Part shown: piece after piece, positions 12,189-50,962 of the stretch
Position numbering within the stretch: position 1 is the stretch's first letter
Layout of the letters: every line of letters starts with the position of its first letter
Origin: Setoptus koraiensis
Taxonomy: Eukaryota > Animalia > Arthropoda
Direction of reading: 5' to 3'
Assembly (NCBI GenBank): GCA_048013815.1
Contig: CM106586.1
Coordinates: forward strand, 8,432,001-8,496,000
Length of the DNA: 64,000 nt
The notes under the pieces: model-generated
What the model saw: only the letters and a program-made list of their open reading frames with translations
What the model was told of the DNA's origin: nothing
Database searches by the model: none
Translations under genes and position numbers: made by a program

Positions 12189-15100
12189 ATGGACAACAAT
12201 AAATACAGATCCTACACACAGCAAATGGATAAGGCCCTCAAGGCTTTTGAATATACTACAGAATGGGCAGATTTGGTCAATGCTCTTGGTAAGGTCAACA
12301 AAGTTTTAGCCAATTATTCACAATTTCCAGTTATTCCACGCCGCTTTGTAGTTGGACAACGATTGGCACAATGTATGCACCCAGGACTACCCAATGGCGT
12401 CCAATTGAAGGCATTAGAAACTTATGATTTATTATTCAAGGCTATAGGAACAGATAGATTAATGCAGGAACTCAGCATATACTCTAATGGATTATTTCCG
12501 TTATTAAGTCACGCCGATTTAAATGTCAAGCCGGCCCTATTAGATTTATACGAATCACATTTTCTTCCATTGAATGAACGCCTCAGACCAGCATTGGATG
12601 GCTTCCTCATTGCCACATTGCATGGTCTTGAAGAGAACACCGATTTCTACAAAAGAACAAATGATTTGTTGTTACGAGTTTGCTCTGGTGTTGGTTCAGA
12701 TTATTTCTATGGCTCATTATGGAGATGTATATTAAATGATCCATCTGTTAGGTTGCACGGCATGAATTTTCTCATATCACATTTCAACAAGAAGCGGCCT
12801 CTTGAAAATCAAATGCACATCTTAGGTACATCCATTGAAACTCTTATTAATGCCATGTGTGTTTCATTGCTAGATACACGAAACGTTCTTGTTCAAAGAG
12901 CTGCCTTAGACTTATTATTATGTTGCTTTCCATTGCATAATCAGCAAATTGGACAAAATGATATGATAACGGTAGTCACTGCTTCCGTAACCGTTCTACT
13001 CAGGCGTGATACATCATTAAATAGGAGACTGCACGATTGGCTATTTAATAAGGATTTCAAAAAATCTGCCGATCTACCAATATATAACTCTAGCCAATCT
13101 AACACAAAAACATCCAGGGAGCAAAGAGAAAAAGAACGCAGGACATTATATTTTGAGACGTATGCTAAACAACTTGTGATAGAAGCATACAAAAATTGTC
13201 TTTCAAATCCATCAAGTATGATTAATATACCGAGCAGTTGGTCTAGTCTAGGTGATTTCTGGTGTTATCGACTTCTCATCTGCCAATTAGATCATAATGA
13301 AATATGCGAGTTAATAATTGATGAATTAAGCATCGAAATACTACGTGCAATGCGCATTGATTTCTATAATCAATCAGTAACCAAGCCTCAGCTTATCGGA
13401 ATTATGCAGAGACTTCTAGAGAGAATGGATATATGCTACATCTGGAGAAGGATTTCCATCTTGTTAAATAAATGCAAAGAAAAAGAAACTGAGACATCAG
13501 AAGGGCAGTCCGATGACAATATCAATGAGATGGGCGATAAAACTGTTGGTGCAGGGCCGACCAATATCTTGGAATTATGCGCCTTGTCTGACTTCATAAT
13601 GGATTCTATTCCCGTTCAAAACTATCTCAAGGAAGCCAAATCGCATCTCACGCTGACATTAAATGACATTCTTAAGCTTATGGATGAACAATGTGATAAA
13701 TTTATGGTTAACGAGTTTTTAGCCCTACTAAGAATCGTCAGACGTTTATTTCAAAATATAGATTTACATCCCAATGAAGATATATATGTTCAGGACTCGG
13801 GCTATCGTTATACATCCGACACTCCGATAAATTCAAATAGTATGACTTTAACTAATGAAAAAGTCATCGAGGATGATGAGTATGCAGAGGAGGTGGCCGA
13901 GCAATCAAGTGCCGAAAGTAGTAACCACAGTCACGCAAACAACGCCAATACTACCTTAGTACCACCGAGCATTTGTACACTAGTGGAGAATTATCAAAGT
14001 CTTTTCCACACGATTGTCATGCGACGACTTGTTTGCTCTCAACCTGGACTTCCGGATCATGTTAATATGAACACCAGGATAAACGAGTTGTATGTTGTGT
14101 GTAGTAACTATCTCCTTAGAAAATTGCCAGTTACAGGCTTAGAGCTCAAGATGCCGGTTATCTTCGTGGATAAAGATCTTGGTCGTGTTTACGAGAAGAT
14201 GTGCGAATTACTGCTGGACATATCCCACCTACCCATTGAGACATGCATTTCTGGCATCACATCGTCCGACGCTGCAACAACTAGTCAAAGTATTCGAGAC
14301 ACTCAGAGCCAAACATTCAACCTCGATTATTGTAAACCTTGGGTTAAAGATGTTATAATTCTGTCGGGATTCGCTGAAGATGCTGTATCGATCAACTACT
14401 CCTCAATCAAAGTTATACTTAATCTTCTCAGCGTTTTCAAATTGACCTTAGATTCTTCATTCGCGACATCCAATATGGTGGGGCAAGCGACAATGTTAAC
14501 CGAGGGAGAATATGCATACATATCGGATAAAACGTGTTGGTTTCAAATGGTGATGAAGAAACTGTGGGAGAATCTAAGATTTGGGCCAAAATGGATCTTG
14601 TATTTGGATACTGTAAATCTTATACAGCACCTACACAATCTCACCTTTCAGATGTCTGTCTGTGAAGATATCATATGTTGTAATATGAACTCGCCCGATG
14701 AGGCAATCGCCTACGAATCACGTAAAAGATTTGAGGAATTAATGTTTTCGATGCCCAGAGATATGAAATCTTTTTCGATGTTGAAGCATCGTGAATTGGA
14801 GCGACCTCTCTTCTTCATGCTAGACAGTCTGTCGCATAAAATGGACCCTTTTAATTGTTCTGGTGGGCATTGGTTATCTAGAGTATTCAAGTCCAACTTG
14901 ATATCGAGGGTATTAGAGCCGTCATTGCTCATTCTCTTGCACGTAGATACGGCAAGGATTCCAAGTTCCTGCACTGAAATAATTCTAAAGAATCAGCTCC
15001 ATTCGCATCTGTTATTCTATCCGCAAGTATATGACTCTCATCGGATTGCCTATGCCTTAAATACTTTATGGAACATAATTTCGGCTGAACCTCATAGAGG

Positions 15101-18100
15101 TCTCCTGAGCATGGCAAAATCTACTATAGGTACATCCTATGATCTACAAGTTCTGTATGGTCGTCACAGGAATTCTGTAGCTGGAAAAGACTTCCACGCC
15201 GATATAGTTATTGAAGGCCAATTTAGAAATATTTCGCTTCTAGAGGTTATAATAACTATCTGTCTGGACTACTTATGCGGTTATTATCTCAATTTGTCAC
15301 CAGCAAAACTAACGCAAGCAGAGATATTAGGCAATCAGCGAGTTCGTATACTCGCTTGCGAAATACTTAGAGGAATAATGAGCAACTTTATAGAAGCCAT
15401 CAAGAGTCGTCCTACATTTCTACCGTTGATTCATGACATGCTCAACAGATGTCAAGTTCAAAAAATAATCCTCCATTGCATCATAACTTCGGTTTATTGT
15501 GCTCAACAAGAGCAAAAAGAGCACTCTGATGAAGTTACATCGAGCGAGCTTATCGATCTTAATGATGGCGTAAGCGACAAGTCCTTCCGTGAAAATTTTC
15601 AGAAAACTTTGTTGCGTCTCTTGGAGGAAGTTCTCAAGTTGGAGTATAGAGTAGCACCAATCAATGTAATAACCGAGACTGAGTGTCCCAACGGAAGAAG
15701 AGAAAGTGATTCGAGATCAGCTAGAATCAGATATCAGCCAGATATTAACTCTAGTTCGCTGAAGTACTATCAAAATATATTGATATCGTCTCAATCGATG
15801 TTTTTGACGTCCATTCAGACTGCTCTTCAACAAGTGAATCAAGCAGGCCTTCACATGAACTGGCTGTCGATGATTGAAGCCACTCTTCCCATAGCTGGAA
15901 GATCTCTCACTCGACTGACAGTCTGTGTGATCACTCAACTCTGCCACAACCTCGAGGCCATATCGCAAATGATCATCGATGGAAAGGAGACGCAAGACCT
16001 CAAGCTAACTATGACTCCAAACTACTTATCTATACTGATAAAGAGCCTATCCACACTGGCGCACTATTGTCTTATAGATTCTTCGTCGAGTGGTTACGGT
16101 CATCAAGCATCGATGTCTTCGAACTTGACACAACGATCTGAGTCGTTGTCGACTCTGGCATCAAGCGCGGCGGTTGGACAATCACCAAATATAGCAAGTC
16201 TTTCACAAGGATGTGTATCTTCTGCAAGTTCTGTCACATTAACTAGTGCTGGAACCAACGGCCCTAGTAGCCTAGGTCCTCTTCATGCAATCTCCAACTT
16301 ATGGCATGTGTTTTCGCAGGATCAGAGTCAGGATAGTATGACCTCTTTCTCTTTGAATCAGGGGTCCACTCAAGGTGATCCATTGATCAATGCAAGAAAG
16401 ACAATACTGAGTAGACTGTCCAGAATCATTTCAGCCCTACTGCAAGTATGGAAAGCAATGGTGATTATAGAAAATTATTCAGACAGTGTTCCATGGCGAG
16501 TGTTAGGTTCACCCAGTGACGTCAAGAAGCAAATATTGAATTTTCTGTCGCCTATATCAGTGATACATGGAACGCACTTCATGAGCGCTATATCTGTTGT
16601 TTGGTATGATCTCAGAACGATTTCAACTGTAAGATCTAATGGTTTATCCAAGCGAGTAGTCATACCGACTTGCTCGGCCGACCAGAGTCTTCTCGTTCAA
16701 ATAATTGCAGCGATTCGTGTCCTACCTATGGAATCGGTGCTTCAAACCACTCGTCAAGTGATGCGCAGTCCCCCTCAAGCCCAAGATACACGAAACAAAC
16801 GCCGGATACCCATTGAGGTAGGCTTGCTTCAGTTCTTTTTGGCCTATATCAAAGAATATCCGGTATCTCAGCTACTGGAATGCTGGAAGTCATTGTTGCA
16901 GTTATTGAGGGAAGGAGTTCAGCTAGGTCCACCTGCGATGCCTTTGGCACAATTTCATCTACTAGCGATACTACATGAATTTGTGCAAACAGCCCCTCTC
17001 ATAGAAGACAGAAAAGACCAGAAAGACCTACAAGATGTTACTCAAAAATTGATTGATTCATTCACAAATGTAGTTGGAGCTCGCTTGGCTCAAACAAGAT
17101 GGCTAAGAAGTGGCCTCGAAGTTGAGCCAGGTCCTCAAAATGACGCTCTAGATGAGGAGAGTGCACTTGCTCTATTTGAGAAAAATTTTGGAACAGAAGT
17201 TCATGATGGTATATTCAGCGGCGAATCAAAACTTAGCGAACATTTCACAGATACTGATAGTATAATATCGACAACAACAAATAATACAAACACAAATACT
17301 GATGGCGACGATAGTTCATATCTCGCAAAATTCAGTGTTCAAGCGCTTAGTGCTTTGGCCGAATTCGTTGCTCCAGTGCTAGATGTTGTTTATGTCAGTG
17401 ATGAAAAGGAGAAAGTTGTCTCTTTGATAAACAGTATCATGTACTATGTGACACCATACTTGAAGAATCATCATCAGCACAACTCACCTAGCTTTCTCGC
17501 TTGCTCGCACCTGTTGTCTAGCATCTCCGGCTATCAGTATACGCGAAAGGCCTGGAGAAAGGATGCGCTAGAATTGTTGTTGGACTCTCAATTCTTTCAA
17601 ATGGACTCTTCGTGTATGGAACATTGGAAAGTTATTGTTGATCATCTTATGACACATGATAAAACAACTTTTCGCGATTTCCTATCTAGGATGTCGATCA
17701 ATCAAACCGGTGGAGCCTTGAAATTATTCGCAAGTCGCGATCAGGAGTTCGAGCAAAGAGCTTCACTCATTAAACGAATGGCATTTATTTTATTTTGTAG
17801 TGAGCGCGATCAATATCAAAAGTACATACCAGAAATTCAGGAAAAATTAATAGAATCATTGCGCGTCAGTCAGTCAGATATAGTGCAAGCGCAAATTATG
17901 TTATGTTTCAGGGTGCTTGTTATTCGTTCTTCAGCGCACCATTTAACATCATTGTGGCCTTTTGTATATACAGAGATGTTTCAAGTTTTACTAGAGATAG
18001 AGTCACAGTTTGAATCGGACAGCGAGAAACAGGAAGTCACCAACAACAGCAGTCGTTGTCAATTGTTTTTATATACATGCAAATTATTAGATATTGTTCT

Positions 18101-18467
18101 AGCCTTGCCTGCGGACTCCTTGCCACAGTTTCAAATGTATCGTTGGTCTTTCGTAAGTGGTTGCGATGATCCGCCGACTGATACTAGCAGCTCTACTCCA
18201 CCTTATGAGCCCCACTTAGTGCGCATTGAACGTCGACTCCGGAGTCGTAACCTCAATCCAACCCTTTTACCATGGAGGACTCACTTTCCTATATTGACAT
18301 TAAATAGAATTAGTGACCCAATGGAGCTCCATCCATTTTTCTATACACTAGTGAAGATGAATGAACGTGAAGAGCCCTGCAACAGCTCTAGTAGCGCATC
18401 AGGTGCAGATTTAGCCTTTATAGATTCAATCATAGAGAGTGATTTTCTCGAACCTTACGTCCAATAA
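12189..18467 (+). CDS. DOP1: Protein dopey-1 homolog (DOP1/pad-1 family, Golgi-endosome trafficking), 2092 aa, uninterrupted ORF
   Basis: N-terminal Dopey_N signature ([52 protein letters not shown]); C-terminal Dopey motifs ([30 protein letters not shown]-like, [34 protein letters not shown], ending DFLE). Confidence 0.97.
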   Translation: [2092 protein letters not shown]

Positions 18468-18551
18468 TATTTAAATCAATGCAATAAATTATACAATAAA
18501 TTTTTGAGCAACAGCACCATTACCCATAGTGGCATTAAGAGTCAACAGACA

Positions 18552-19990
18552 CTAAGAGTGCTAGTCAATGGTTGCATAGTTGAAACATGATCGAGATATC
18601 ATTATTAGATTTGCATTATTTCAATCATCGTCTTCGCCTAATATATTCTACTGTCTGCAGTTGCCTCAGTATATAGGCCCTCTCATTGCTCCGTCTCGGA
18701 TAGCTTATGATCTGTATTACTAAGAGTGCCAGTCAATGGTTGCATAGTTGAATTTTGATCGAGATATCATAATCAGATTGCCATTATTTCAATCATCATC
18801 TTCACCTAATATTTTCCATTATCTGCAGTTGCCTCGGTATGAAGGTCCTCTCATTGCTCTGTCTCAGATACTTTGTGATCTGTATTACTAAGAGTGCCAG
18901 TCAATGGTTGCATAGTTGAATTGTGATCGAGATATCATTAATAGATTAGCATTATTTCAATCAAATTGCATAGATAGATTTGTATACCACTGTCAGGCAC
19001 TCACCTATAGATTTGACTCGTTCGTTGGCATCCCCGCCTCATATTTGTGCTACCTGCAATTGCCTCAGAGTGGAGGCTTTCTCATTGCTCCCCCTCGGCT
19101 GTCTTAGGATCTGTATTACTAAGAGTGCCAGTCAATGGTTGCATTTATGTTTAGGTATATTAAACGATATGATATCAAGATATTACTATAAATAAATTTT
19201 CAATCAAGATACCTTTTAAGGCACTATTATTCTGCAAACCAATGACATGCACTCACCTAACAGTCACTGTTGCAAAATACAATCACCCTACGAGGGGCAC
19301 CTAAAGTGGATTAATTTCACATCGTCCTAAGAGTGCCAGTCAATGGTTGCATAGTGGAAGTATGATCGAGATATCATTATTAGATTAGCATTACTTCAAT
19401 AAATTTGCATAGATAGTTTTGTATACCATTGTCAGGCACTCACCTATAGATTTGACTTGTTAGTTGGTCCCTTCGCCTCATATCTTTGCTATCTGGAGTT
19501 GTCTCAGAATGGAGGCGCTCTCATAGCTCCTTCTTGGCTGTCCTATGATTTGTACAACTAAGAGTGCCAGTCAATGGTTGCATTAATATTTGGGTATATC
19601 AAATGAAATGATATCAAGATATTACTATACATAAATTTTCAATCAAGATACCTCTTAAGGCACTATTATTCTGCAAACCAATGACATGCACTCACCTAAC
19701 AGTCACTGTTGCAAAATACAATCACTCAACGAGAGGCACCTAAAATTGGATTGATCTCATATAGTCCTAAGAGTGCCAGTCAATGGTTGCATAGTGGAAG
19801 TATGATCGAGATATCATTATTAGATTAGCATTACTTCAATAAATTTGCATAGATAGTTTTGTATACCATTGTCAGGCACTCACCTATAGATTTGACTTGT
19901 TAGTTGGTCCCTTCGCCTCATATTTTTGCTATCCGAAGTTGTCTCAGAATGGAGTGCCTCTCATTGCTCCTTCTTGGCTGTCCCATGATT
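18552..19990 (-). repeat. Tandem array of 7 units (168,168,231,208,231,209,~225 nt) sharing a 26-nt core CTAAGAGTGCCAGTCAATGGTTGCAT (+ strand)
   Basis: Core starts at 18552 (one C>T variant), 18720, 18888, 19119, 19327, 19558, 19767; spacers fall into two alternating sequence types. Confidence 0.95.
18888..19883 (-). ncRNA. Putative spliced non-coding transcript with five hairpin introns (19883-19767, 19695-19558, 19443-19327, 19256-19119, 19004-18888)
   Basis: Each intron starts AG|GTGAGTGC and ends CATTGACTGGCACTCTTAG|; lengths 117 or 138 nt; exons of 114 and 70-71 nt that were checked have stops in all three frames. Confidence 0.55.
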
Positions 19991-20011
19991 TAAGACTGAT
20001 GCTGATCGCAC

Positions 20012-20021
20012 ATCTATATAC

Positions 20022-20052
<31 letters not shown>

Positions 20053-20420
20053 AATATATATTAATATATATACATATAGTGATACATCTCGGAATTTTAG
20101 CCTGCTTGTGTGTGTGTATGTGTGTGTGTGTGTTTGCGTGTTCGTTCGTCGCCGTCTCTGTCTGTCTGTCTCTTTCTCTCGTTCTACCTCGTACGCATTA
20201 GCAACGGCCGCAGTCATAGCGTTGATAGTGCTGCAGAACACAAAATGGCCGACCCAGCATGCTTGCGATTTGGTGCTCTGTACCTATAACACACATACAT
20301 ACAAATCCATACATACAAATACGTACATACGAATACATACATACAAATACATACATGCCACGAATATAGGTATAGCCATTGCCGTTGTTTGTGTACAATA
20401 CAATAACTAACTAGCATACT
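20012..20420. repeat. Simple-repeat spacer ((TA)n, (TG)n, (TACA)n) at the centre of the large inverted duplication
   Basis: Direct reading; lies between the two oppositely oriented repeat arrays. Confidence 0.85.
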
Positions 20421-20455
20421 AATATCTATATTCATCCAATATACCGGAAAATAAA

Positions 20456-21487
20456 TGCAAACATTGACCGGCACTCTTAGTTGTACAAATCATGGGACAG
20501 CCAAGACGGAGCTATGAGAGCGCCTCCATTCTGGGACAACTTCAGATAGCAAAGATATGAGGCGAAGGGGCCAACTAACAAGTCAAATCTATAGGTGAGT
20601 GCCTGACAATGGTATACAAAACTATCTATGCAAATTTATTGAAGTAATGCTAATCTAATAATGATATCTCGATCATACTTCCACTATGCAACCATTGACT
20701 GGCACTCTTAGGACGATGTGAAATTAATCCACTTTAGGTGCCCCTCGTAGGGTGATTGTATTTTGCAACAATGACTGTTAGGTGAGTGCATGTCATTGGT
20801 TTGCAGAATAATAGTGCCTTAAGAGGTATCTTGATTGGAAATTTATTTATATATATTTATATCTTGATATCATTTCATTTAATATACCCAAATATAAATG
20901 CAACCATTGACTGGCACTCTTAGTAATACAGATCATAGGACAGCCAAGAAGGAGCGATGGGAGAGCCTCCGTTCCGAGGCAACTCCAGATAGCGGAAAAT
21001 ATTAGGCGAAGATGCAAACAAGAAAAACATATAGGTGAGTGCCTGACAATGGTATACAAATCTATCTATGCAAATTTATTGAAGTAATGCTTATCTAATA
21101 ATGATATCTCGATCATACTTCCACTATGCAACCATTGACTGGCACTCTTAGTAATACAGATCACAAAGTATCTGAGACAGAGCAATGAGAGGACCTTCAT
21201 ACCGAGGCAACTGCAGATAATGGAAAATATTAGGTGAAGATGATGATTGAAATAATGGCAATCTGATTATGATATCTCGATCAAAATTCAACTATGCAAC
21301 CATTGACTGGCACTCTTAGTAATACAGATCATAAGCTATCCGAGACGGAGCAATGAGAGGGCCTATATACTGAGGCAACTGCAGACAGTAGAATATATTA
21401 GGCGAAGACGATGATTGAAATAATGCAAATCTAATAATGATATCTCGATCATGTTTCAACTATGCAACCATTGACTAGCACTCTTAG
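20456..21487 (+). repeat. Inverted copy of the hairpin-intron array: 6 cores, 3 complete introns (20595-20711, 20782-20923, 21035-21151)
   Basis: ATGCAACCATTGACTGGCACTCTTAG ends at 20711, 20923, 21151, 21319; variants end at 20480 and 21487; donors AG|GTGAGTGC at 20595, 20782, 21035. Confidence 0.92.
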
Positions 21488-21571
21488 TGTCTGTTGACTC
21501 TTAATGCCACTATGGGTAATGGTGCTGTTGCTCAAAAATTTATTGTATAATTTATTGCATTGATTTAAATA

Positions 21572-23358
21572 TTATTGGACGTAAGGTTCGAGAAAATCAC
21601 TCTCTATGATTGAATCTATAAAGGCTAAATCTGCACCTGATGCGCTACTAGAGCTGTTGCAGGGCTCTTCACGTTCATTCATCTTCACTAGTGTATAGAA
21701 AAATGGATGGAGCTCCATTGGGTCACTAATTCTATTTAATGTCAATATAGGAAAGTGAGTCCTCCATGGTAAAAGGGTTGGATTGAGGTTACGACTCCGG
21801 AGTCGACGTTCAATGCGCACTAAGTGGGGCTCATAAGGTGGAGTAGAGCTGCTAGTATCAGTCGGCGGATCATCGCAACCACTTACGAAAGACCAACGAT
21901 ACATTTGAAACTGTGGCAAGGAGTCCGCAGGCAAGGCTAGAACAATATCTAATAATTTGCATGTATATAAAAACAATTGACAACGACTGCTGTTGTTGGT
22001 GACTTCCTGTTTCTCGCTGTCCGATTCAAACTGTGACTCTATCTCTAGTAAAACTTGAAACATCTCTGTATATACAAAAGGCCACAATGATGTTAAATGG
22101 TGCGCTGAAGAACGAATAACAAGCACCCTGAAACATAACATAATTTGCGCTTGCACTATATCTGACTGACTGACGCGCAATGATTCTATTAATTTTTCCT
22201 GAATTTCTGGTATGTACTTTTGATATTGATCGCGCTCACTACAAAATAAAATAAATGCCATTCGTTTAATGAGTGAAGCTCTTTGCTCGAACTCCTGATC
22301 GCGACTTGCGAATAATTTCAAGGCTCCACCGGTTTGATTGATCGACATCCTAGATAGGAAATCGCGAAAAGTTGTTTTATCATGTGTCATAAGATGATCA
22401 ACAATAACTTTCCAATGTTCCATACACGAAGAGTCCATTTGAAAGAATTGAGAGTCCAACAACAATTCTAGCGCATCCTTTCTCCAGGCCTTTCGCGTAT
22501 ACTGATAGCCAGAGATGCTAGACAACAGGTGCGAGCAAGCGAGAAAGCTAGGTGAGTTGTGCTGATGATGATTCTTCAAGTATGGTGTCACATAGTACAT
22601 GATACTGTTTATCAAAGAGACAACTTTCTCCTTTTCATCACTGACATAAACAACATCTAGCACTGGAGCAACGATTCGGCCAAAGCACGAAGCGCTTGAA
22701 CACTGAATTTTGCGAGATATGAACTATCGTCGCCATCAGTATTTGTGTTTGTATTATTTGTTGTTGTCGATATTATACTATCAGTATCTGTGAAATGTTC
22801 GCTAAGTTTTGATTCGCCGCTGAATATACCATCATGAACTTCTGTTCCAAAATTTTTCTCAAATAGAGCAAGTGCACTCTCCTCATCGAGAGCGTCATTT
22901 TGAGGACCTGGCTCAACTTCGAGGCCACTTCTTAGCCACTTGTTGAGCAAGCGAGCTCCAACTAATTGGGAATGAATCCATCAATTTTTGAGTAACATCT
23001 TGTAGGTCTCTTTTATGGTCTTTTCTGTCTTCTATGAGAGGGCATGTTTGCACAAAATTCATGTAGTATGCAGTAGATGAATTGTGCCAAAGGCATCGCA
23101 GGTGGAACCTAGCTGAATCCTTCCCTCAATTAATGCAACATGACTTCAGCATTCCAGTAGCTGTGATACCGGATATTCTTTGATATAGGCCAAAAAGAAC
23201 TGAAGCAAGCCTACCTCAATGGGTAATCGGCGTTGTTTCGTGTATCTTGGGCTTGAGGGGGACTGCGCATCATTGGACGAGTGGTTTGAAGGATGGATTG
23301 CACGGAAAGTACGCGAATCGCTGCAATTATTTGAACAAGAAGTACTCTGGTCGGCCGA
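21572..23358 (-). pseudogene. Inverted partial Dopey duplicate, copy 1 (matches Dopey 16674-18467)
   Basis: 363-aa ORF 21572-22663 is identical to the Dopey C-terminus; a 1-nt deletion near 22676 and further indels toward 23300; no Dopey start codon or N-terminus. Confidence 0.85.
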
Positions 23359-23374
23359 CTGACACTATGACGAT

Positions 23375-25190
23375 GCTGTTGCTCGGAGATTCATTGTATA
23401 TTTATTGCATTGATTTAAATATTATTGGACGTAGGTTCAGAAAATCTACTCTCTATGATTGAATCTATAAAGGCTAAATCTGCACCTGATGCGCTACTAG
23501 AGCTGTTGCAGGGCTCTTCACTTCATTCATCTTCACTAGTGTATAGAAAAATGGATGGAGCTCCATTGGGTCACATCTAATTCAATATAGGAAAGTGATC
23601 ACTCCATGTAAAAAGGGTTGATGAGGTTACGACTCCGGATCGACGTTCAATGCGCACGATGGGTCATAGGTTGAGTGCTGCTAGTATCAGCGGCGATCGT
23701 CGCAAATCACCTATGAAAGACCAACGATACATTTGAACTGAAGGTCCGCAGGCAAGGTAGAACATATCTAATAATTTGCATGTATACTAAAAACAATTGA
23801 CAACGACTGCTGTGTTGTGTGACTTCTGTTTCTCGCTGTCCGATTCAAACTGTGACTCTATATCTGACCGATGCGCGCATGATCCTGATTTCCGGGTAAG
23901 TACTTTTGATATTGATCGCGTCACTACAAATAAATAAAGCCATCGTTTGATAGTGAAGCTCTTTGCTCTGATCGCGACTTGCGAATAATTTCAAGGCTCC
24001 ACCGGTTTGATTGATCGACATCCTAGATAGGAAATCGCGAAAAGTTGTTTGTCTTTATGTGTCATAAAGATGATTCAACAATAACTTTCCATATGTTCCA
24101 TACAGAAGAGTCCATTTGAAAGAATTGAGAGGTCCAGCAACAATTGTCTAGTGCATCCTTTCTCCAGGCCTTTCGCGTATACTGGATAGCCAGAGATGCT
24201 AGAAACAGGTGCGAGCAAGCGAGTGTGTAAAGTAATGGTGAGTTTGTGCTGATGATGACATTCTTCCCTACATTAGTCCACATAGACTGATACTGTTTAT
24301 CACCCCCATCGACACACCATTCTCTTTCATCCCTGACATAAGACTGAATCATCTGTGACACTGGCGCAACGAATTTCGGCCCGACAGTCACTAAGCCCCT
24401 TGATGTCTAGTTGAACGTGTGTTGCGTAGCTGTGAGTTATCGTCACCCTCGTTATTTGTGTTGTGTTTATTTTGTTGTGTTGTCGTTAAGTAGTTATGTG
24501 TGCAGTCTCTCGTGAATGCTCGCTAAGTGTTTAGATTTCGCGCGCAGTTTATGTCGCAACATGTGAACTTCTGTTCCAAAATTCTTCTCATGAATAGAGC
24601 AAGTGCTGTTACTACTGTCATGTGTCTAGAGCGTCATTTGGGGACTTCTGGTTCGAACTTCGAGGCCACTTCCTAGCCATCTTGTTTGAGCCAAGCGAGT
24701 CGTTCACCTGTCATATATGTGAATGATATCAATCAAATTGTGTGAGGAAACTATCATTGTCGGTTTTTTGGTCTTATGTTGCTTTATGAGATGAGCTGTG
24801 TTTGCACCAATTGTGGTGCTAGTTATTGCCAGTAGATGAACTGTGCAGCTCGCAAAGGCTCATCGCAGTGTGGTGTCTAGCTGAACCTTGCCTTGTGGGC
24901 AAGTAACGCTGTGGTGACATATGACTTCCAAGCATGTCCAGTGCTGAGATACACGTGTTCGTTATTGTCTGTGTGGATATGTGCTGGATAAAAGCCACTG
25001 ACACGCTGTGTGCTACTCCATGGGTGATCCGGCGTGTGTTTTACTGTTGTTTTTCTTTGGTGCGGTGATGGTGTGTGGCTCCGCATTGACTTGACGAGTT
25101 GTGGTGTTTGAAGACGGATTGCCCGGGCGTACGCGAATGTGTGTGTCAAGTTAGTTTTGTAGTGCACGCGAAGATTTTGGTCGGCTCGAG
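23375..25190 (-). pseudogene. Partial Dopey duplicate, copy 2, heavily indel-ridden (possibly unpolished sequence)
   Basis: Colinear with Dopey C-terminus; carries the 117-nt and about 12-nt deletions also seen in copy 4; many single-base indels, G/T-biased after about 24200. Confidence 0.7.
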
Positions 25191-25254
25191 TGTTTGACCT
25201 CGCATGTGTGTTTGAGTCGCGTGTGTGCTGTGTGGTCTGTGTGTTATCATTGTG

Positions 25255-27176
25255 GTATTTTTAATTGCATTGATTTCTAATTTATTATTGGGACGTAAGG
25301 TTCAACGTGTAAATCACTCCCAATGATTGAATCAACTAACTGGATAAATCTGCACCGATTTGTACTAGAGCTGTTGCAGGGCTCATCAATTTCATTCATC
25401 TCCACCAGATTAATAGACTAACAAATTGTCTGGAAATCCAAATAGACATACACCGAGTCCTACCACTCACCAATCTGTCAATCATAGGCTCTCGGGAGTA
25501 CTCCATGAGTAAAAGGGCTTGGATTTGAGGTTAGCCTCCGGATCCCTCGACGTTCAATGCGCGCATGAGCCTGGGGCCTCCATATCGCGTCGTCGCCAGG
25601 GCTGCAATCAGTATTCAGTCGCACGCATCCTTCAGTTCAGCACTCACTACCCCCGCGTGTAGCATATATCCACATAGACCCTCACGTATCTCTACTTCAC
25701 CTTCAGAATAACTCATGCCATGGACCATCAAGCGTCCCCAGCCCAGCAAGCGCACTTAGAAACCAACATCTCCACTCACACAACAATCATTGCTTCGATT
25801 ATCTCTCTGCATCTGCTGTTATATATTAATATAACAAATTGGATCAACTATATTCGACTACTGCTGCTTGAGCTCCAATCATTACATGCGTTACTCGCAC
25901 ACCGCGCTCTATCTAAGGTTTGTCACAAAACCTGGGCATCTCCTACTTTGTGTACATGTATACAAGAATCGCTAGCCTCACCTATACCCGCGATTTGATA
26001 TAGAAGAGAGAGAGCATACGGTAAGTACTTCTTGATATTGATCGCGCTCACTACAGAATAAAATAAATGCCATTCGTATGATAAGCGAAGCTCTTTGCTC
26101 GAACTCCTGATCGCGACTGCGAATAATTTCAAGGCTCCACCGGTTTGATGATCGACATCCTAGATAGGAAATCGCGAAAAGTGTTTTATCATGTGTTCAT
26201 AAGATGATCAACAATAACTTTCCAATGTTCCATACACGAAGAGTCATTTGAAAGAATTGAGAGTCCAACAACAATTCTAGTCGCATCCTTTCTCCAGGCT
26301 TTCGCGTATACTGATAGCATGAGATGCTAGACAACAGGTCGAGCAAGCGAGAAAGCTAGGTGAGTTGTTGCTGATGATGATTCTTCGAGTATGGTGTCAC
26401 ATAGTACATGATACTGTTTATCAAAGAGACAACTTTCTCCTTTACATCACTGACATAAACAACATCTAGCACTGGAGCTACGAATTCGGCCAAAGCACTA
26501 AAGCGCTTGAATACTGAATTTTGCGAGATATGAACTATACGTCGCCATCAGTATTGTGTTTGTATTATTTGTTGTTGTCGATATTATTACTATCAGTATC
26601 TGTGAAATGTTCGCTAAGTTTTGATTCGCCGCTGAATATACCATCATGAACTTCTGTTCCAAAATTTTTCTCAAATAGAGCAAGTGCACTCTCCTCATCG
26701 AGAGCGTCATTTTGAGGACCTGGCTCAACTTCGAGGCCACTTCTTAGCCATCTTGTTTGAGCCAAGCGAGCTCCAACTACATTTGCGAATGAATCAATCA
26801 ATTTTTGAGTAACATCTTGTAGGCCTTTCTGGTCTTTTCTGTCTTCTATGAGAGGGGCTGTTTGCACAAATTCATGTAGTATCGCTAGTAGATGAAATTG
26901 TGCCAAAGGCATCGCAGGTGGACCTAGCTGAACTCCTTCCCTCAATTAATGCAACAATGACTTCCAGCATTCCAGTAGCTGTGATACCGGATATTCTTTG
27001 ATATGGGCCAAAAAGAACTGAAGCGAGCCTACCTCAAAGGGTATCCTGCGTTTGTTTCTTTTATCTTGGGCTTGAGGGGGACTGCGCATCACTTGACGAG
27101 TGGTTTGAATAACGGATTGCACGGGAAGTACGCGAATCGCTGCAATTATTTGAACAAGAAGACTCTGATCGGCCGA
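25255..27176 (-). pseudogene. Partial Dopey duplicate, copy 3, noisy at 25255-26000 and cleaner beyond
   Basis: ORF 26565-26945 gives REGVQLGPPAMPLAQFHLLAILHEFVQTAP; shares KGL, FAN and FSI variants with copy 4. Confidence 0.75.
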
Positions 27177-27194
27177 CTGACACTTTCTGACGAT

Positions 27195-28720
27195 GCTGTT
27201 GCTCGGAAATTCCTTGTATATTTTATTGCATTGATTTAAATATTATTGGACGTGAGGTTCGAGAAAATCACTCTCTATGATTGAATCTATAAAGGCTAAA
27301 TCTGCACCTGATGCGCTACTAGAGCTGTTGCAGGGCTCTTCACGTTCATTCATCTTCACTAGTGTATAGAAAAATGGATGGAGCTCCATTGGGTCACTAA
27401 TTCTATTTAATGTCAATATAGGAAAGTGAGTCCTCCATGGTAAAAGGGTTGGATTGAGGTTACGACTCCGGAGTCGACGTTCAATGCGCACTAAGTGAGC
27501 CTCATAAGGTGGTGTAGAGCTGCTAGTATCAGTCGGCGGATCATCGCAACCACTTACGAAAGACCAACGATACATTTGAAACTGTGGCAAGGAATCCGCA
27601 GGCAAGGCTAGAACAATATCTAATAATTTGCATGTATATAAAAACAATTGACAACGACTGCTGTTGTTGGTGACTTCCTGTTTCTCGCTGTCCGATTCAA
27701 ACTGTGACTCTATATCTGACCGACTGACGCGCAATGACTCCTGAATTTCCGGTATGTACTTTTGATATTGATCGCGCTCACTACAAAATAAAATAAATGC
27801 CATTCGTATGATAAGTGAAGCTCTTTGCTCGAACTCCTGATCGCGACTTGCGAATAATTTCAAGGCTCCACCGGTTTGATTGATCGACATCCTAGATAGG
27901 AAATCGCGAAAAATTGTTTTATCATGTGTCATAAGTATGGTGTCACATAGTACATGATACTGTTTATCAAAGAGACAACTTTCTCCTTTTCATCACTGAC
28001 ATAAACAACATCTAGCACTGGAGCAACGAATTCGGCCAAAGCACTAAGCGCTTGAATACTGAATTTTGCGAGATATGAACTATCGTCGCCATCAGTATTT
28101 GTGTTTGTATTATTTGTTGTTGTCGATATTATACTATCAGTATCTGTGAAATGTTCGCTAAGTTTTGATTCGCCGCTGAATATACCATCATGAACTTCTG
28201 TTCCAAAATTTTTCTCAAATAGAGCAAGTGCACTCTCCTCATCGAGAGCGTCATTTTGAGGACCTGGCTCAACTTCGAGGCCACTTCTTAGCCATCTTGT
28301 TTGAGCCAAGCGAGCTCCAACTACATTTGCGAATGAATCAATCAATTTTTGAGTAACATCTTGTAGGCCTTTCTGGTCTTTTCTGTCTTCTATGAGAGGG
28401 GCTGTTTGCACAAATTCATGTAGTATCGCTAGTAGATGAAATTGTGCCAAAGGCATCGCAGGTGGACCTAGCTGAACTCCTTCCCTCAATAACTGCAACA
28501 ATGACTTCCAGCATTCCAGTAGCTGAGATACCGGATATTCTTTGATATAGGCCAAAAAGAACTGAAGCAAGCCTATCTCAATGGGTATCCGGCGTTTGTT
28601 TCGTGTATCTTGGGCTTGAGGGGGACTGCGCATCATTGGACGAGTGGTTTTAAGAATGGATTGCACGGGAAGTACGCGAATTGCTGCAATTATTTGAACA
28701 AGAAGACTCTGGTCGGCCGA
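27195..28720 (-). pseudogene. Partial Dopey duplicate, copy 4, clean sequence with three internal deletions (187, 117, 12 nt)
   Basis: ORFs 27929-28666 and 27243-27932 match the Dopey C-terminus with substitutions (IEI, KGL, FAN, FSI, KTI, IIRM, SRS, YEA, PHVQ); unit length 1544 = 1860 - 316. Confidence 0.9.
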
Positions 28721-28736
28721 CTGACACTCCCTGACG

Positions 28737-29665
28737 ATGCTGTTGCTCGGAGATTCATTGTATATTCTATTGCATTGATTTAAATATTATTGGACGTAAG
28801 GTTCGAGAAAATCACTCTCTATGATTGAATCTATAAAGGCTAAATCTGCACCTGATGCGCTACTAGAGCTGTTGCAGGGCTCTTCACGTTCATTCATCTT
28901 CACTAGTGTATAGAAAAATGGATGGAGCTCCATTGGGTCACTAATTCTATTTAATGTCAATATAGGAAAGTGAGTCCTCCATGGTAAAAGGGTTGGATTG
29001 AGGTTACGACTCCGGAGTCGACGTTCAATGCGCACTAAGTGGGGCTCATAAGGTGGAGTAGAGCTGCTAGTATCAGTCGGCGGATCATCGCAACCACTTA
29101 CGAAAGACCAACGATACATTTGAAACTGTGGCAAGGAGTCCGCAGGCAAGGCTAGAACAATATCTAATAATTTGCATGTATATAAAAACAATTGACAACG
29201 ACTGCTGTTGTTGGTGACTTCCTGTTTCTCGCTGTCCGATTCAAACTGTGACTCTATCTCTAGTAAAACTTGAAACATCTCTGTATATACAAAAGGCCAC
29301 AATGATGTTAAATGGTGCGCTGAAGAACGAATAACAAGCACCCTGAAACATAACATAATTTGCGCTTGCACTATATCTGACTGACTGACGCGCAATGATT
29401 CTATTAATTTTTCCTGAATTTCTGGTATGTACTTTTGATATTGATCGCGCTCACTACAAAATAAAATAAATGCCATTCGTTTTATGAGTGAGGCCTCTCG
29501 TTCGAAGAGTTCATACTGTCTTGGCTCTTATCCTACAACACATGCCATAAGTTGGAGATCGCGCGAAGAGGACCTATGGCTACTAGGGCCGTTGGTTCCA
29601 ACACTAGTTAATGTAACAGAACTTGCAGAAGATACACATCATTGTAAAAGACTTGCTATTGACTA
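28737..29665 (-). pseudogene. Partial Dopey duplicate, copy 5, truncated and fused to a diverged fragment of Dopey about 16190-16345
   Basis: ORF 28787-29476 is identical to the last 229 aa of Dopey; 29500-29660 reverse complement matches GTATCTTCTGCAAGTTCTG...GGAACCAACGGCCCTAGTAGCC...CTCCAACTTATGGCATGTG with substitutions and a +1 indel. Confidence 0.85.
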
Positions 29666-32124: not shown

Positions 32125-35100
32125 TCACGTTGTAGGATTCTGTTCCAGCCACCTTTGGTTCCATTTGGCAAATTTATTTCTCTTCAGTTCGTTTACTTTA
32201 GATTGCATAGCTTTGGACAGTCTGACACGTTTGTAGAATGTAACATGCTCGCCAGCATTGAATATAAGAAGTCGTCGATAATCGTTCGGATTGAATTTGC
32301 ACTGACCTTCATCATTCCTGCCAACTACCTTCTTGCTCACTTTTAAGCGTCTTTCTCTTGCCATATACCTACGAACATTCCTGCTGAGGAACCTCCTACT
32401 TGCTATTTTGGCATTATCGGTGTCGATTTCTTGATCTTCATCTTCTGACAGCGTTTCAGTGTCCAGCAACTCTATAGTTAATTTAGCTTCTGGTCTGTAC
32501 ATTATCACTTTGAAGCAGTTTTCATCCTCTAATACTTGTTCAATCTTCTTTTGGTAGCTCGGTTCGTCAAGAGATCTAGATTCTTTTAAATACAAGTTTG
32601 TACATTGCTGACATACCTCATCAGCAACTATGTGCTGCAATTGTCTGACAATGTTTTGAACGACTTTATCCAGTGTAAATGCCACATAAGCATGTATACC
32701 GAACATATCTCTGAGCATATCTTCATACTGAAAACCATCTAGGTTCCCGTCAAGCAATTGCTTAATCATATCTAAAAAAACCGAGAAAAAGTCCTCTACC
32801 TCGATATCATCTAGATAAATGGAAACAGAGAAGATAAAAGCAGAAAATGGTTAGACTATGATAAGCTAATCTGAATAAAAGAAAGAGATACAATAACGAT
32901 CTATACTTACTCTTTGGTTTAAGCCTCAATGCTATGGCGGTGGATTCCCTTCTATCCTTGCGCTCTTTTTCTTCTTCAGCTATTAAAACACGTGCTTTCT
33001 CATATATAGTCCCTAGTCGTTGACATAGAATATGATGTAACCTGAAGAAGCAATACCATTTGTTATCAACGTAGAACAAGGTGCTAACGTCTCCTAATTC
33101 AGTACTTTGAGTAAGGTGTAGGGTTGTTTTTGAAGGTGCAAGTTCTTTAGAAGGCGCTTTAACTGATACCGATATCTCAGGTGTTTCAAGACCTTCGAGG
33201 GGGGGTTCATCACACTTGATTCTGAAGAGGTCTCTGGAAGTAGTTTTTTTCGTGCGAGGGGCAGATTGATCATTTGTTTCATCTTCCATAGGTTCATCAT
33301 TATCCATCTCGTCATCACTCAAATCTCCACGAGGTGAGGAGAAAAAATCTGGTATAAAGTGTCTCATAAGTTGCTTAATCTTCTGTTTCTCTTCTTTGTG
33401 TATGGAGGTTTGTCTTTTAACATGGTGTATGATGAGATTGCAAGCTTCATCTAGCATGTCTTTGTCTTTGTACACCAAAGTGATGTGTGGTGAACTTGGT
33501 GCACTAGCTGGTTGATCACCACCAACCAGAATATTCAGGTCTTCCTCCTTCCTTAGATCTTCAATCTCTTTTATGAGAGATTTACTGCGTAAGAATTTTA
33601 TATCATTCTGTTTGAAGGTTATCCCTTGATGGTCCAGTGATTTCATATAATACTTTTCATTCTGATCCCTCCATATTTTATTGAACTGTTTTTGAGCATC
33701 GCGCCATTCTTCATCTTTGGCTTTAAGTCTCCTTAGTATAAGAGGTACGGCAACAACGGGATTTTTCTTCGAACCCTCGATGATCTCGGGTGCTTTATCA
33801 CCGTATATTCTTTTTATTGCCCTTTGATGAATGACATTTGATGTTCCTCCAAGGGTGTCGTCTAGTTTGAACTTGCACCTGTCTTCATATGGCAATCTTT
33901 CCATTTTTCTTTTAACAGCTTCCAGAACTCGTATAGTTAACAAATTAGACTCAATAACTACGTCAAGTTCGAATCGTTCATCCTCACATCGATATATATA
34001 CTCTTCATACTGAGTTTTGCGTGAGCTAACAAAAGTCGAATCCTCTGACCACGATGGAAATGATACTAACGTGTCATTCAACACTTCTTTACACAGTTGA
34101 GTCCTGCCTGTGCATTTGGGTTGTACGAAATTCTTGGGGAGTCCTCGATATGATGCACCATGACGTTTGCAGGACGAGTAATCGATCTCAACACCCGCTT
34201 CAGATGCGAGCCTTTCTCTTTCACGTTGACGAACTTGGCTCGACAAACTTTCATAAGTTGAAGGCTCGTTAGACAAAGAAGGGGTCGATCCAACAGCTGA
34301 TGGCCCCTCTTTGTAACCTAGGAAGTCCTTGAACCACTTCAGTAACTCCGGGAAACGCCCGAGAAAAGTTGTAACTAGCTGAATCAATTCTGCCCGAGAT
34401 AAAATTTCATGATTGTACAATACCAAGCATCGTAGAAAATTTTCGTATACTTCTTGACTCCTGAGAGCTTTACGAACTTTGTCAAAGAAAGCATATTCAG
34501 TCAGTGATCCATGTTTTCCAGCTTCAGCCAAAGAGACGTCTCTGAGTGAGGTCATACGGGGCCGCTTCAACGACCCATACGTAATATTTGCATTGGCATT
34601 CGGGTTCTGTCTCTTCAATGGAGTAGAATCTCTCTTGTTTGCAGAAGGGCTGTTTCTCGGTGTGGCCAGTACTCTTGAACTCTCAGGAGTAACATGTCTA
34701 ATAGTAACACCAAGATTGGAGCCTGTATTCTGCGTTGGAGAATGTTGATGAACGTACGCTAATGAATTGATTGTTCCTCCAACAGTTGAATTTGTACCAT
34801 TAGCATCTGGCAGGAATTGGCCAAACTCTTCAAGTAAATCCTGTTGGTTATGAAAGAGTCTGGCAACCTGGGTGTATACTTCATTTTCAAGCAACATCTT
34901 TGATCGCGGAACTTTAGTATGCTGATCTCTTTGGTAAGCGTGTAGAATTTCAAGGAATTGTTGATATATCTCTGGATTTGCCGAGAATCTATGCTTGATT
35001 TTGTTAACATAGTTGAGCGCATGATTGAACCCGCATTCTGCTCCTGGTTGCCTGGAGGCCCTGGCTGCTTGTTGGGGCGAACCCTGGAGCTGGTTCTGGA

Positions 35101-36772: not shown

Positions 36773-36843
36773 TGCATCGGCCGGGAATCGAACCCGGACC
36801 ACTTCATTGGAAGTGAAGTATTGTACCATTCAACTACCGATGC
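36773..36843 (-). tRNA. tRNA-Gly, anticodon TCC, 71 nt, no intron
   Basis: Full cloverleaf: acceptor GCATCGG/CCGATGC + A, D stem GTTG/CAAT, anticodon stem CTTCA/TGAAG with loop CTTCCAA, T arm CCGGG-TTCGATT-CCCGG. Confidence 0.93.
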
Positions 36844-43620: not shown

Positions 43621-46600
43621 TGGCACACAGCAGGACCGAACCGACAGTCAGCAGAGTGTGCGCAATTGAGGCAATTCGATGGCATTGACAACGTCGTCGC
43701 CTTGCACTTTGCAAACTCGATGCCCGTTGCTGTAACGCTGACTGGTCGCGCCCGGAGTGTGCGCACGCAAATCAACTGACAGCGCCATTACCTAACATCA
43801 TGCTAGTAACATCATGTTAGGCACTGGCCAACATGGGGCGCGTTTCGTCCGTCAGGGGCTCGCGCCGCTTTCAACATGTTACACGGCAGTTGTTGCACGC
43901 AGCAGTTGTTTAGTGTGTGTGTGCTATTCAGTAGTGTATCGACGACAGGCTTGGGCCAGTCTCATTGGGGCCTGCGGCCAACGGACAGCGCCTTGGTCGG
44001 GCGCAGGTGAGGTGCGATACTCGCTCGTCAGTTCACTGGCTCATTCGCAGCGACTGGCTGGCGACTGGCTGGCAGCTAGTTGCGCCTACACACTGTGTAG
44101 GCTCTACACTGCAGAGTGCGCTGGCCAGTGAATTAGCGAGAGCGCCCCCGAGCGTGGAAAGCGCGCACCTACTAGCAGTAGACTTACAAGTTAGTGGCGT
44201 GAGAGTCTCACGGTGAGACACGATGCAGCCCACGGGCCGCACTTGTCGCGGCACAATGTTCCCGCTGTGCCGCGCGCATGCACAAGCGGCGCACGGGAGT
44301 GGAGCTGGCCAGCGAGTCAGTCAACCAGCGAGCCAACGAGCCAACGAGCCAGTCAGCCCGTCAGCCCGTCAGCCAGCGAGCCAGCGATCCAACGAGAGCA
44401 TAGACTTACAGTGGCGGTTACATAACGAAGCAGGATGCTGGCAACGGCGCTCGTCACGGCCACGTTTGATGATGTGGCCAGCCGAGGCAACAGCAGCAGC
44501 AGCAGTGCATGTTGTTACGCAACTAGCGCCGGCACCCAACTGGCAACTGGCCGCCGCCGCCGCCGCCGCCGCAAGCGACCGGCTACCGGCGAGACTCGGG
44601 CTCGCAACTTGCGAGTCACAAGTGTAACAAGCGACTCTCACCCGATTATCCGGTCCGGCCGGCCGGCCGGCGAGCTGTGCGCAGCGTCGAGCCGGAGTGC
44701 AGTTTCCGTTTTAAAATAACTATGCCAATATCAGCGTCAGTTGGCCGGCCGTCTGGTCGCAAACTGTCTGACCGGCCGGACTAGTGGCGCTTGCAGTGGC
44801 GCTTGCAGTTGGCGCGGCATGCAACTGCAACTACAACTGCAAGTGCGTTTCCTTTCACCTTCTTCCTCGTTGATACGATTACATGCGCGCCGACGATCGC
44901 ATGACGATGATTCGTGGCCAAACCTGCCGCGCCATGTGTTACCCGCTCACCTGCCTTACCTGTGCTGCTCACCTGTGTTACCTATGCCGCTCGCCTGTGC
45001 TGCTTACCTGTGTTGCTGCTTGCCAACAGCTCGCCAGCTCGGCGGCTTGGCTTGGCGCCCGCGAGCCGCCGAGCCAAGCGAGCGAGCTAGCCTGCAGTGG
45101 GCTTATAAGTGGCGAGCCCGCTGTCTGCAGCTATTACGCACTTCAATAGACAACTTTTTGCTGGCTGGCTCGCCAATCAGCTCGCCGCCTCACCTGGCCG
45201 GCCCGAATCTCATGGTAATGGCCAGACACGGCATTATGTAGCAGCGCATTATGTAATGTATGTGTGCCAGTGCCAATGCTGCTGCCAGCACACATACATT
45301 ACATAACGCGCCACCATTACTGGCTGTCGTCGTCGGCGGCGGCGGCGCGATGCCTCGGCGGCTGCCACAATAGTCGCACTAATAGTCGTGTTGTCGGCTG
45401 GCAGCCTCTGCCGACATGTCATTGTGTGTGTGTGTGTGTGTGTGCGCTCATTGTTGTCGGTAATAATTGACAAGTGCACCACCGACAGCAACAACTTGGA
45501 CAGCATCGGCGCCGCCAACAACGACAACAACAACATCGACAGCGCCAGCAGCATCGATAGCGCCAGCAGCATCGACACCGACAACAACAGCGACAGCGAC
45601 AACAACAGCGATAGCGACAGCAACATCGACGCCGACAACCACCGCGCCAACGCGAATAAAAGTCACTGATTCATCAATTAGCGCCACCCAGTATCACGTA
45701 ATAATGTCGGCTCGGCCGCTAATAAGCAGCGCTGCTCGCAGCGCGGCCCCCATGCGCAACACACGGGCCCGATATACACTAATCCGATACAAACTTATCC
45801 GATATGAACTTATCCGCAGCGAGCTGCACCTCAACATGCAGCTCATAAACATACGGCACCGATGCGCAATTAATGGCCGCAACCAGCCAGCCAGTGGCTC
45901 GATGATGGGCCGGCCTCGGCGCCGGTGCGCCTGTCGGCACGGGCTAGCTTGGCCGGGATGCCAATACGACGCACACAAGTCGTTCAAATTATCCAATTAG
46001 CGCCCAGTCGCGCCCAGCGCCAAACTAGGGCCAACTTGCCAGAGGCAAACACATTGGCACCTCGGGCCGCCCGTGAGCCGACAGTGTCGGGCCGCCCGTG
46101 GCCGACAGCGTCGGGCCCTTCCGGCTGGCTGCTCGAGTGGGCGCCCGCACTCGCTCGCGGCGCCCAGCCCGACGGGCCGACCGACAGATAAGATCGAATG
46201 GGATCACGTTGGCCCGATCGTTGGCTTTATCTGGCTGGCAGCGGCCAGATATCGGGCGCCGGATAAATGGCGCGCGCGCGCCGGGCCACAAAGCCGCCAT
46301 TGTGGCGCTTGTTAGCCGGCTCTCGCTGGCGCTGCCGGCCGCCAGGCGAGCCGGCCAAAAGTGGGCCAGCGCTCTCAAGGTTAAGCGGCGTGTATTGGCA
46401 CGGTGACAACGGCGCAATTCGCTGGCAAGCTAGCTGGCTGGCTGGCTCACTAGAGCGCTCTTATCGCGCATCAGCGGCCGACCTGCTATTGAAATTTGCA
46501 ACTCGCTCTCGTATATCTGGCCGTGTGTGTGTGTGCAATAGATTAATAGACGGCTGCGAGCACCATCCATTATACGCAACAACAGCAACAACGACGCCAA

Positions 46601-50922: not shown

Positions 50923-50924
<2 letters not shown>

Positions 50925-50962
<38 letters not shown>
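50925..50962. repeat. (GT)n microsatellite
   Basis: Direct reading. Confidence 0.95.

Follow-up and report, generated by a model that had tools for sequence, protein, structure and literature searches.

Tandem self-complementary spliceosomal introns in a mirrored non-coding array beside DOP1 in Setoptus koraiensis

Layout of the array

The stretch of DNA considered here is 64,000 nucleotides of the genome of Setoptus koraiensis (assembly GCA_048013815.1, contig CM106586.1, forward-strand positions 8,432,001 to 8,496,000; hereafter "the window", numbered from its first letter). Close to the 3' end of a DOP1/Dopey gene, it carries an array of short repeated units containing GT-AG introns whose two ends are complementary to each other. 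This locus is best explained as a non-coding transcription unit that is spliced, repeated in tandem and duplicated as two mirror-image copies, each transcribed outward from the centre of a palindrome. The array is real and unusual; a reading in which its introns would give rise to small RNAs is plausible, while their interpretation as introners (intron-generating mobile elements) is not supported.

The signature of the array is a 26-mer, ATGCAACCATTGACTGGCACTCTTAG, found 13 times in the window when up to three mismatches are allowed and 0 times in 100 shuffled sequences. They are split between the minus strand (seven copies, 18552-19792) and the plus strand (six, 20455-21487), and 10 of the 13 are exact; the three substituted copies (at 18552, 21462 and 20455) all belong to places that lack a 5' arm, i.e. 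the complementary segment with which the 26-mer otherwise pairs. An initial annotation of this DNA, made from the sequence alone, had described eight GT..AG units ending in an identical 26 nt, with substitutions confined to units without a 5' arm, and both descriptions are borne out: all eight units are present, the ends of each pair, and they fall into two types by intron length, type A (117 nt) and type B (138-142 nt).

When the units are aligned, each being cut just 3' of TTAG, three kinds can be recognised. Type-A units consist of an exon of 110-114 nt and the 117-nt intron, type-B units of an exon of 70-71 nt and an intron of 138-142 nt, and a third, short kind (n = 4), which the initial annotation did not mention any more than it did the degenerate 3' arm of Table 1, measures 168 bp and has neither donor nor 5' arm. 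In intron orientation the order of units is A-B-A-B-A-short-short in the left array and, following a partial type-B 3' end, A-B-A-short-short in the right array (Table 1). Tandem Repeats Finder reports periods of 168 bp (2.4-2.5 copies) and 439 bp (2.5 copies) with 86-91% matches, and the array thus shows the head-to-tail repetition that characterises a satellite or tandem repeat. Moreover, the left and right arrays are the arms of a palindromic duplication, a feature likewise missing from the initial annotation. The outer palindrome arms (17529-18916 and 21123-22510) are 100% identical over 1388 nt, beyond which identity switches abruptly to 85-96%, and the complete identity of the outer arms points to a very recent duplication.

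Table 1 Positions of the array, its units and the adjacent features in the window
Feature	Positions	Strand	Evidence and remarks
Left array	18552-19997	-	Five exon+intron units, then two 168-bp short units
Right array	20431-21487	+	Partial type-B 3' end, three exon+intron units, two 168-bp short units
Type-A intron L4, 117 nt	18888-19004	-	Exact skip in X5 and X10; fold
Type-B intron L3, 138 nt	19119-19256	-	X5 skip, joint 19118>19257; fold
Type-A intron L2	19327-19443	-	Identical to L0 and R1; fold
Type-B intron L1, 138 nt	19558-19695	-	Fold, alignment
Type-A intron L0	19767-19883	-	Fold; X5 contig 19883-19980 has 5 extra letters past the donor
Type-A intron R1	20595-20711	+	X5 skip, joint 20591>20709 (cut +3)
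Type-B intron R2, 142 nt	20782-20923	+	X5 skip, joint 20777>20920 (cut +4)
Type-A intron R3	21035-21151	+	Fold, alignment
Short units L6, L5 (168 bp each)	18552-18887	-	3' arm kept, no 5' splice site or 5' arm; unspliced in X5 contig
Short units R4, R5 (168 bp each)	21152-21487	+	100% identical mirror images of L5, L6; X10 contig crosses R4 into R5 unspliced
Degenerate 3' arm, 2 mismatches	20455-20480	+	Inner edge of right array, no partner 5' arm
Palindrome spacer	19998-20430		Unique, with TA/GT/CATA microsatellites; covered by X1 and X2, not X5
DOP1/Dopey gene	12189-18467	+	Single 2092-aa open reading frame; convergent with left array
Inverted copy of DOP1 3' end	21523-23358	-	Outer right palindrome arm; a right-array transcript would enter it in antisense

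Splicing, conservation and pairing of the introns

Contigs of four public sequencing runs (X1, X2, X5 and X10) were placed on positions 18300-21700. Contigs of X5 skip exactly two introns of the left array (L4 and L3, which read CT..AC on the plus strand and hence GT..AG on the minus strand) and two of the right array (R1 and R2, reading GT..AG). One X5 contig of 766 nt runs unbroken from 18265 to 18887 through both short units, jumps to 19005-19118, and makes a second jump over the type-B intron. The RNA-labelled run X10 derives from another organism and is approximately 95% identical; one of its contigs, of 255 nt, skips a 117-nt intron. The joint is given there as connecting opposite strands, from 19005 to 21152, but as 18675-18887 and 21152-21364 are identical mirror images it represents the skip of intron L4, past which the contig continues unspliced through one and a half short units. 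The run type of X5 is not on record and X5 is taken as RNA from its coverage, given that intron depth (0.1-1.9) is far below exon depth (8-12), that the unique spacer (20010-20465) is absent, and that no contig of it exceeds 9 kb. X1 and X2 contain no skips, extend over introns and spacer as well as exons, and are read as DNA; the depth of X1 tracks copy number, at approximately 98 for the unique spacer, 385 for the DOP1 3' end with its four copies, and 289 for a contig consisting mostly of the type-A intron, which has three. It is unlikely that the skips of X5 reflect the element-free DNA of a relative, since introns are present in X5 at low depth, the spacer is absent, and the same skip occurs in the RNA-labelled X10. 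Consequently, with four of the eight units skipped at their predicted sites in contigs from two organisms, the array carries real GT-AG spliceosomal introns that are accurately removed, and the use of these GT and AG sites, which the initial annotation had proposed, is confirmed.

Coverage by X5 begins by 19980 in the left arm and by 20489 in the right arm, in the latter case just past the degenerate acceptor at 20480. A TATA-rich run with a TCAGTC word at 19994-20030 (minus strand), just upstream of the first exon covered by X5, is a candidate promoter. Transcription is predicted to begin near 19997 on the minus strand and near 20480 on the plus strand. At the other end, the first AATAAA downstream of the right array lies at 22245, within the inverted DOP1 copy, and an X5 contig is continuous from the array into DOP1 3' coding sequence, as far as 18265. 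Together these observations suggest that the array RNA carries a few hundred nt antisense to the 3' coding end of DOP1, with the caveat that a strand-blind contig could fuse two convergent transcripts.

The spliced RNA is non-coding. As the initial annotation had stated, the joined exons contain stops in all frames, and neither spliced model holds an open reading frame (ORF) longer than 31 aa. Each short unit does contain a 47-aa ORF on the strand opposite the introns (18580-18891, plus; 21148-21459, minus). Between its two versions 12 of 47 residues have changed, as against 23 of 168 nt, with no sign of purifying selection, and an exact-protein look-up found no such product on record; this ORF is probably due to chance. 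A coding role of the array RNA is rejected on these grounds.

Variation was compared between parts of the units. Among type-A and short units, 51 of 90 exon columns are variable, as against 11 of 48 in the 3' interior of the intron and 1 of 26 in the 26-mer (Fisher p = 7e-7 for 26-mer versus exon). The type-A introns L0, L2 and R1 show no difference over 117 nt, whereas 5, 14 and 15 of 114 positions differ in the exons that belong to them. Similarly, the 439-bp units L0-L1 and L2-L3 are separated by 30 differences, none of which falls in the 117-nt type-A intron (P ~9e-5). In the three type-B introns the arms contain no variable column out of 50, compared to 11 of 88 in the interior (p = 0.007); apart from this, divergence of type B proceeds at much the same rate in exons and introns. 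From one type to the other, interiors align poorly and the last 26 nt are identical. Introns and arms are thus more conserved than exons, in support of the initial annotation, and the pattern strongly suggests that the arms, along with the entire type-A intron, are under more constraint than the exons.

Two different 5' arms pair with the one invariant 26-nt 3' arm. Both depart from its perfect complement at different places, with a common departure at position 10, and this shared deviation suggests a single origin of the 5' arms followed by their divergence while the 3' arm stayed fixed. In predicted folds of all eight introns the first and last 20-odd nt pair together: nucleotides from the third onward are paired with the 3' arm, leaving GU and UUAG unpaired at the ends. 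The terminal stem of type A comprises 15 bp (7+1+7), followed by a large branched loop. That of type B comprises 18 bp (6+4+5+3) in 21-22 nt and is duplex-like, and the interior goes on as a second long imperfect helix, such that an imperfect palindrome spans the entire type-B intron, on which the initial annotation was silent. Folding z-scores of the introns range from -2.8 to -4.0. In the register that leaves GU and UUAG free, 83% of cells pair, as opposed to 30-42% when the partner is slid by one to three columns. The sole substitution in a 5' arm (A to G in L4) turns an A-U into a G-U and keeps the pair. The terminal stems and overhangs predicted by the initial annotation are therefore truly in the sequence. 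As a control, we considered an ordinary 100-nt intron of the nearby Sin3 gene (32811-32910, minus strand; GTAAGT...CTAG), which splits the Sin3a_C domain. It displays no terminal pairing (-5.1 kcal/mol, z +0.9) and no likeness to the 26-mer, so that, by this one control, the arms are not a general splicing requirement of this genome.

Origin of the units and their genomic surroundings

Comparison of the three kinds of unit offers an indication of how the introns may have arisen. Short units already hold the last ~72 nt of the type-A intron, the 26-mer included, and the difference between them and type-A units is an indel of 61-65 nt, made up of ~22 nt of exon, the donor, the 5' arm and ~20 nt more. 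As the boundaries of this indel are unlike those of the intron, the intron is not a discrete insertion. The type-B intron, in turn, is a foldback of a ~69-nt segment (69+69 nt) that ends in the arm, and the last ~20 nt of its exon are a decayed forward copy of the arm. The 5' arms of both types are diverged inverted copies, with 6-7 mismatches to the 21-nt core, and judging by its sequence an inverted copy of the arm would lie close to a donor. Most simply, units would have been born by repeated local duplication, direct and inverted, of an acceptor-bearing unit of ~170 bp, and not by transposition.

Neither a search with the 26-mer nor BLAST of the array, both covering the whole 64-kb window, returned copies outside 18400-21600, and the 23-nt core had 0 exact matches among metagenome contigs. 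Two stray DNA junctions occur in X1, one leaving the array right after the intron end at 20711 and the other entering it right before the type-B donor at 20780. The contig entering at 20780 brings 106 unlike letters, which have 57% GC and are coding-like, and neither stray sequence is present in the window. As the junction at 20711 comes after a type-A intron and that at 20780 before a type-B intron, they can be viewed as opposite ends of a single variant "exon B" belonging to another array copy. They are a hint of one more variant unit outside the window, or may be part of a gene elsewhere. Read across the putative splice, the stray ends at 20711 and 20780 give an open frame.

The array starts ~85 nt 3' of the stop codon of DOP1, a gene that the initial annotation did not mention, with two AATAAA words in between. 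The closest relatives of this DOP1 are unnamed Logan proteins (65% identity at most), followed by Aceria tosichella (60%) and then by oribatid, trombidiform and spider mites; an exact-protein look-up of it found no match on record. From such relatives the genome is taken to be that of an acariform, probably eriophyoid, mite. The last ~1.85 kb of the gene (16674-18516) recurs in at least five inverted, partly tandem copies within 21523-29506, at 79-99% identity: beyond the copy in the right palindrome arm there are at least four more, reaching up to 29506. Several of these copies retain DOP1_C ORFs (229-363 aa), and if transcribed from the array side they would yield a long RNA antisense to DOP1. 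A further stray junction, seen in X1, X2 and X5, joins array exon position 20578 to DOP1 position 15384 (minus strand), antisense and with an exact match. It has no splice consensus and is not present in the window, and its occurrence in all three runs therefore indicates a further rearranged, transcribed copy outside the window. An X1 contig covering 18459-18735 has a depth of 111, approximately that of a single copy, though the assembly has two identical arms there, and part of the same segment is also present in two further DOP1 copies of the assembly. This low depth reflects either a population difference, unreliable contig depth, or over-representation of the identical outer arms in the assembly.

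Elsewhere in the window, an arthropod-like mitochondrial uL3 gene lies near the array, and a single tRNA gene (36773-36843, minus strand; Rfam 72 bits) is flanked by the Sin3 gene and a KH-domain gene. The region 44000-54000 has a GC content of 58-65%, is crowded with overlapping ORFs on both strands, and lies beside a region of 34-45% GC (4-42 kb).

Function of the hairpin introns and competing explanations

If the introns are the constrained part of this transcription unit, a potential explanation is that its product is the excised intron hairpin, the exons being merely its host. Debranching would leave a hairpin whose GU and UUAG ends amount to a net 2-nt 3' overhang, and the hairpin would then be diced to give one small RNA, derived from the shared 3' arm and with its 3' end at the AG. 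Such a product would resemble the mirtrons of flies, worms and mammals, which are defined by splicing, are independent of Drosha, and have hairpin ends that coincide with splice sites. The array introns share this arrangement, in that each hairpin is a complete intron that is really spliced (four introns in X5, one in X10). They likewise start with GU, have a 3' arm ending in AG with the same net overhang, and keep one arm (3p) invariant while the partner arm varies; a pre-miRNA-like hairpin would have a stem of about 20 bp reaching to its ends, as against 18 bp in 21-22 nt for type B and 15 bp, then a large branched loop, for type A. They differ from mirtrons in their length (117-142 nt), in an excised region of 70-95 nt, in the 15-bp stem of type A, in being tandemly amplified to eight copies with one shared arm, and in that the small RNA is here predicted. 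The large excised region is no strong objection, since the miRNA (microRNA) pathway of invertebrates tolerates such regions in spider-mite mir-375 (180 nt) and fly mir-989 (99 nt) (PMC12553114). The spliced RNA would probably also run antisense into DOP1 3' sequence.

Several points nevertheless weigh against a small RNA. Rfam finds no match in the introns at gathering threshold over the whole window, and hence no miRNA family, and at E-values up to 10 over 18400-21600 it gives only chance-level matches in the microsatellite spacer and none in the introns. The type-A stem is short, with its large branched loop behind it, and there are no double-sided pair changes in the stems; compensatory change is impossible while the 3' arm is invariant, and covariation says nothing about selection. 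In addition, the 26-mer includes a branch-point-like TTGAC, a pyrimidine run and the AG, such that splicing constraint may explain part of its constancy, and it is equally constant in the short units, which have no 5' arm and are seen unspliced. Finally, the array is young, and gene conversion within it could make the 117-nt intron look constrained. The small-RNA reading of the initial annotation is thus weakened by the 15-bp type-A stem and the lack of compensatory changes, while the anatomy otherwise fits. Taking these points together, we regard an intron-derived hairpin RNA of the mirtron kind, with the shared 3' arm as retained strand, as the likeliest of the readings considered here, though one that we advance tentatively; a Dicer product from the 3' arm is, as a separate claim, unlikely. 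The fullest version, an amplified mirtron, is rather unlikely as a whole: it would consist, in a mite with a streamlined genome poor in introns, of a long non-coding RNA whose eight tandem hairpin introns are its only conserved parts and all give the same 3p small RNA (~ACCAUUGACUGGCACUCUUAG), the introns having been born in place by inverted duplication of a 3'-splice-site segment.

Tandem non-coding hosts of intron-borne small RNAs are otherwise familiar from the SNORD115/116 arrays, the C19MC miRNA cluster and Drosophila Uhg. These resemble the array in combining a repeated non-coding exon with a conserved intron, in exons that drift faster, and in the lack of an ORF; in contrast, the array has no C/D or H/ACA boxes and no Rfam match, and its hairpin is delimited by the splice sites instead of lying inside the intron. 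The boxes of small nucleolar RNAs (snoRNAs; C/D and H/ACA) were sought by eye and none was correctly placed, and a snoRNA host gene is rejected on this result and on the absence of any Rfam match in the introns at E-values up to 10. In Drosophila, hp-CG4068/esi-2 comprises tandem hairpins with long perfect duplexes that are cut by Dicer-2 and are not delimited by splicing. There, as here, many tandem hairpins could yield the same small RNA, and a fast-evolving duplicated locus with inverted gene fragments is involved, but the hairpins of the array are delimited by splicing and are not long perfect Dicer-2 duplexes.

An alternative hypothesis, somewhat doubtful in our view, is that the introns are a neutral by-product, i.e. 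that a young satellite-like segmental duplication, in a region given to direct and inverted duplication, happens to be transcribed, that inverted acceptor segments made GT donors, that the stems are relics, and that uniformity follows from recency, conversion and splice signals, with any role of the RNA residing in its antisense relation to DOP1. Nested duplications at all scales (the 69-nt foldback, the 168- and 439-bp tandems, the 1.7-3-kb palindrome and the inverted DOP1 3' copies) speak for this hypothesis, as do the recency of the identical outer arms, the lack of covariation, the similar divergence of type-B exons and introns, and the X5 contig that continues into DOP1. However, the 26-nt block that is identical among type-A, type-B and short units is sharply bounded by poorly aligning flanks, and is too short and sharp for conversion alone. 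Moreover, the 5' arm is constant within a type even though type-B interiors vary, and exons beside identical type-A introns differ by up to 13%. An introner or MITE (miniature inverted-repeat transposable element) origin, which the initial annotation had raised, is very unlikely. Here a transposon with terminal inverted repeats (TIRs) would bring its own donor and duplicate TAG or TTAG at its target, the array would be a tandem amplification of two insertions, and more copies would reside in genes elsewhere. Introners and MITE-derived introns (PMC9860276, PMC12130899) do share with the array inverted-repeat ends, a short direct repeat at both ends (here 3-4 nt) and a donor inside the repeat, the type-B foldback of 138-142 nt is of typical MITE size, and the two X1 contigs join an intron end to sequence foreign to the window, the second of 57% GC. 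Yet the copies are tandem and not dispersed, the boundary of the presumed element does not match the 61-65-nt indel, which is not the intron itself, and the 3' arm and 3' half of the intron exist in intron-less units without any element. Copy number is also local, with no copy in the window outside the array and an X1 depth on the type-A intron of about three times single-copy, as three identical local copies would give, and the stray junctions fit the ends of one variant exon. The TAG or TTAG taken for a target-site duplication is largely what the splice consensus (MAG/GT and YAG/) demands anyway.

The pairing could also serve splicing itself in cis, by joining correct neighbouring sites, ordering intron removal and preventing exon skipping, with the arms kept for fidelity. 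It is compatible with this that the stems start 2 nt past the donor and stop 4 nt before the acceptor, that both arms are conserved, and that every spliced contig seen joins neighbouring sites. On the other hand, the stem hides positions +3 to +9 of the 5' splice site and should hinder U1 binding, the short units keep the arm without a partner, and the Sin3 intron nearby needs no such stem, and we consider a splicing aid quite improbable. Extremely improbable is a circular-RNA factory, in which each exon, flanked by an upstream 3' arm and a downstream complementary 5' arm at intron-like distances, would be back-spliced into a small circle by their pairing. The arms before and after the exons are indeed complementary, but no backward joints were found among the contigs on 18300-21700, linear spliced contigs are present, and exons of 70-114 nt are very small for circles.

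Of the mirtron reading we know of no precedent in the form of a tandem mirtron cluster, and literature searches on clustered mirtrons returned nothing specific. Should the hairpins be diced, the array would be such a cluster, in which a splicing-dependent small RNA is dosed up by the amplification of units, and an amplified mirtron, if true, would be novel on two counts, as a route by which introns are born and as a means of increasing the dosage of a splicing-dependent small RNA. Even if they are not diced, the array would show how usable GT-AG introns can come from local inverted duplication of an acceptor-bearing segment, with the precursor state, the intron-less short units, still alongside the intron-bearing ones. 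Eriophyoid genomes are small (~32-35 Mb, two chromosomes) and poor in introns and repeats (PMC11879100, PMC7738191). As eriophyoid-type mites have lost the bulk of their introns and repeats (PMC7738191, PMC11879100), it is noteworthy to find a locus in which introns have multiplied and vary less than the exons.

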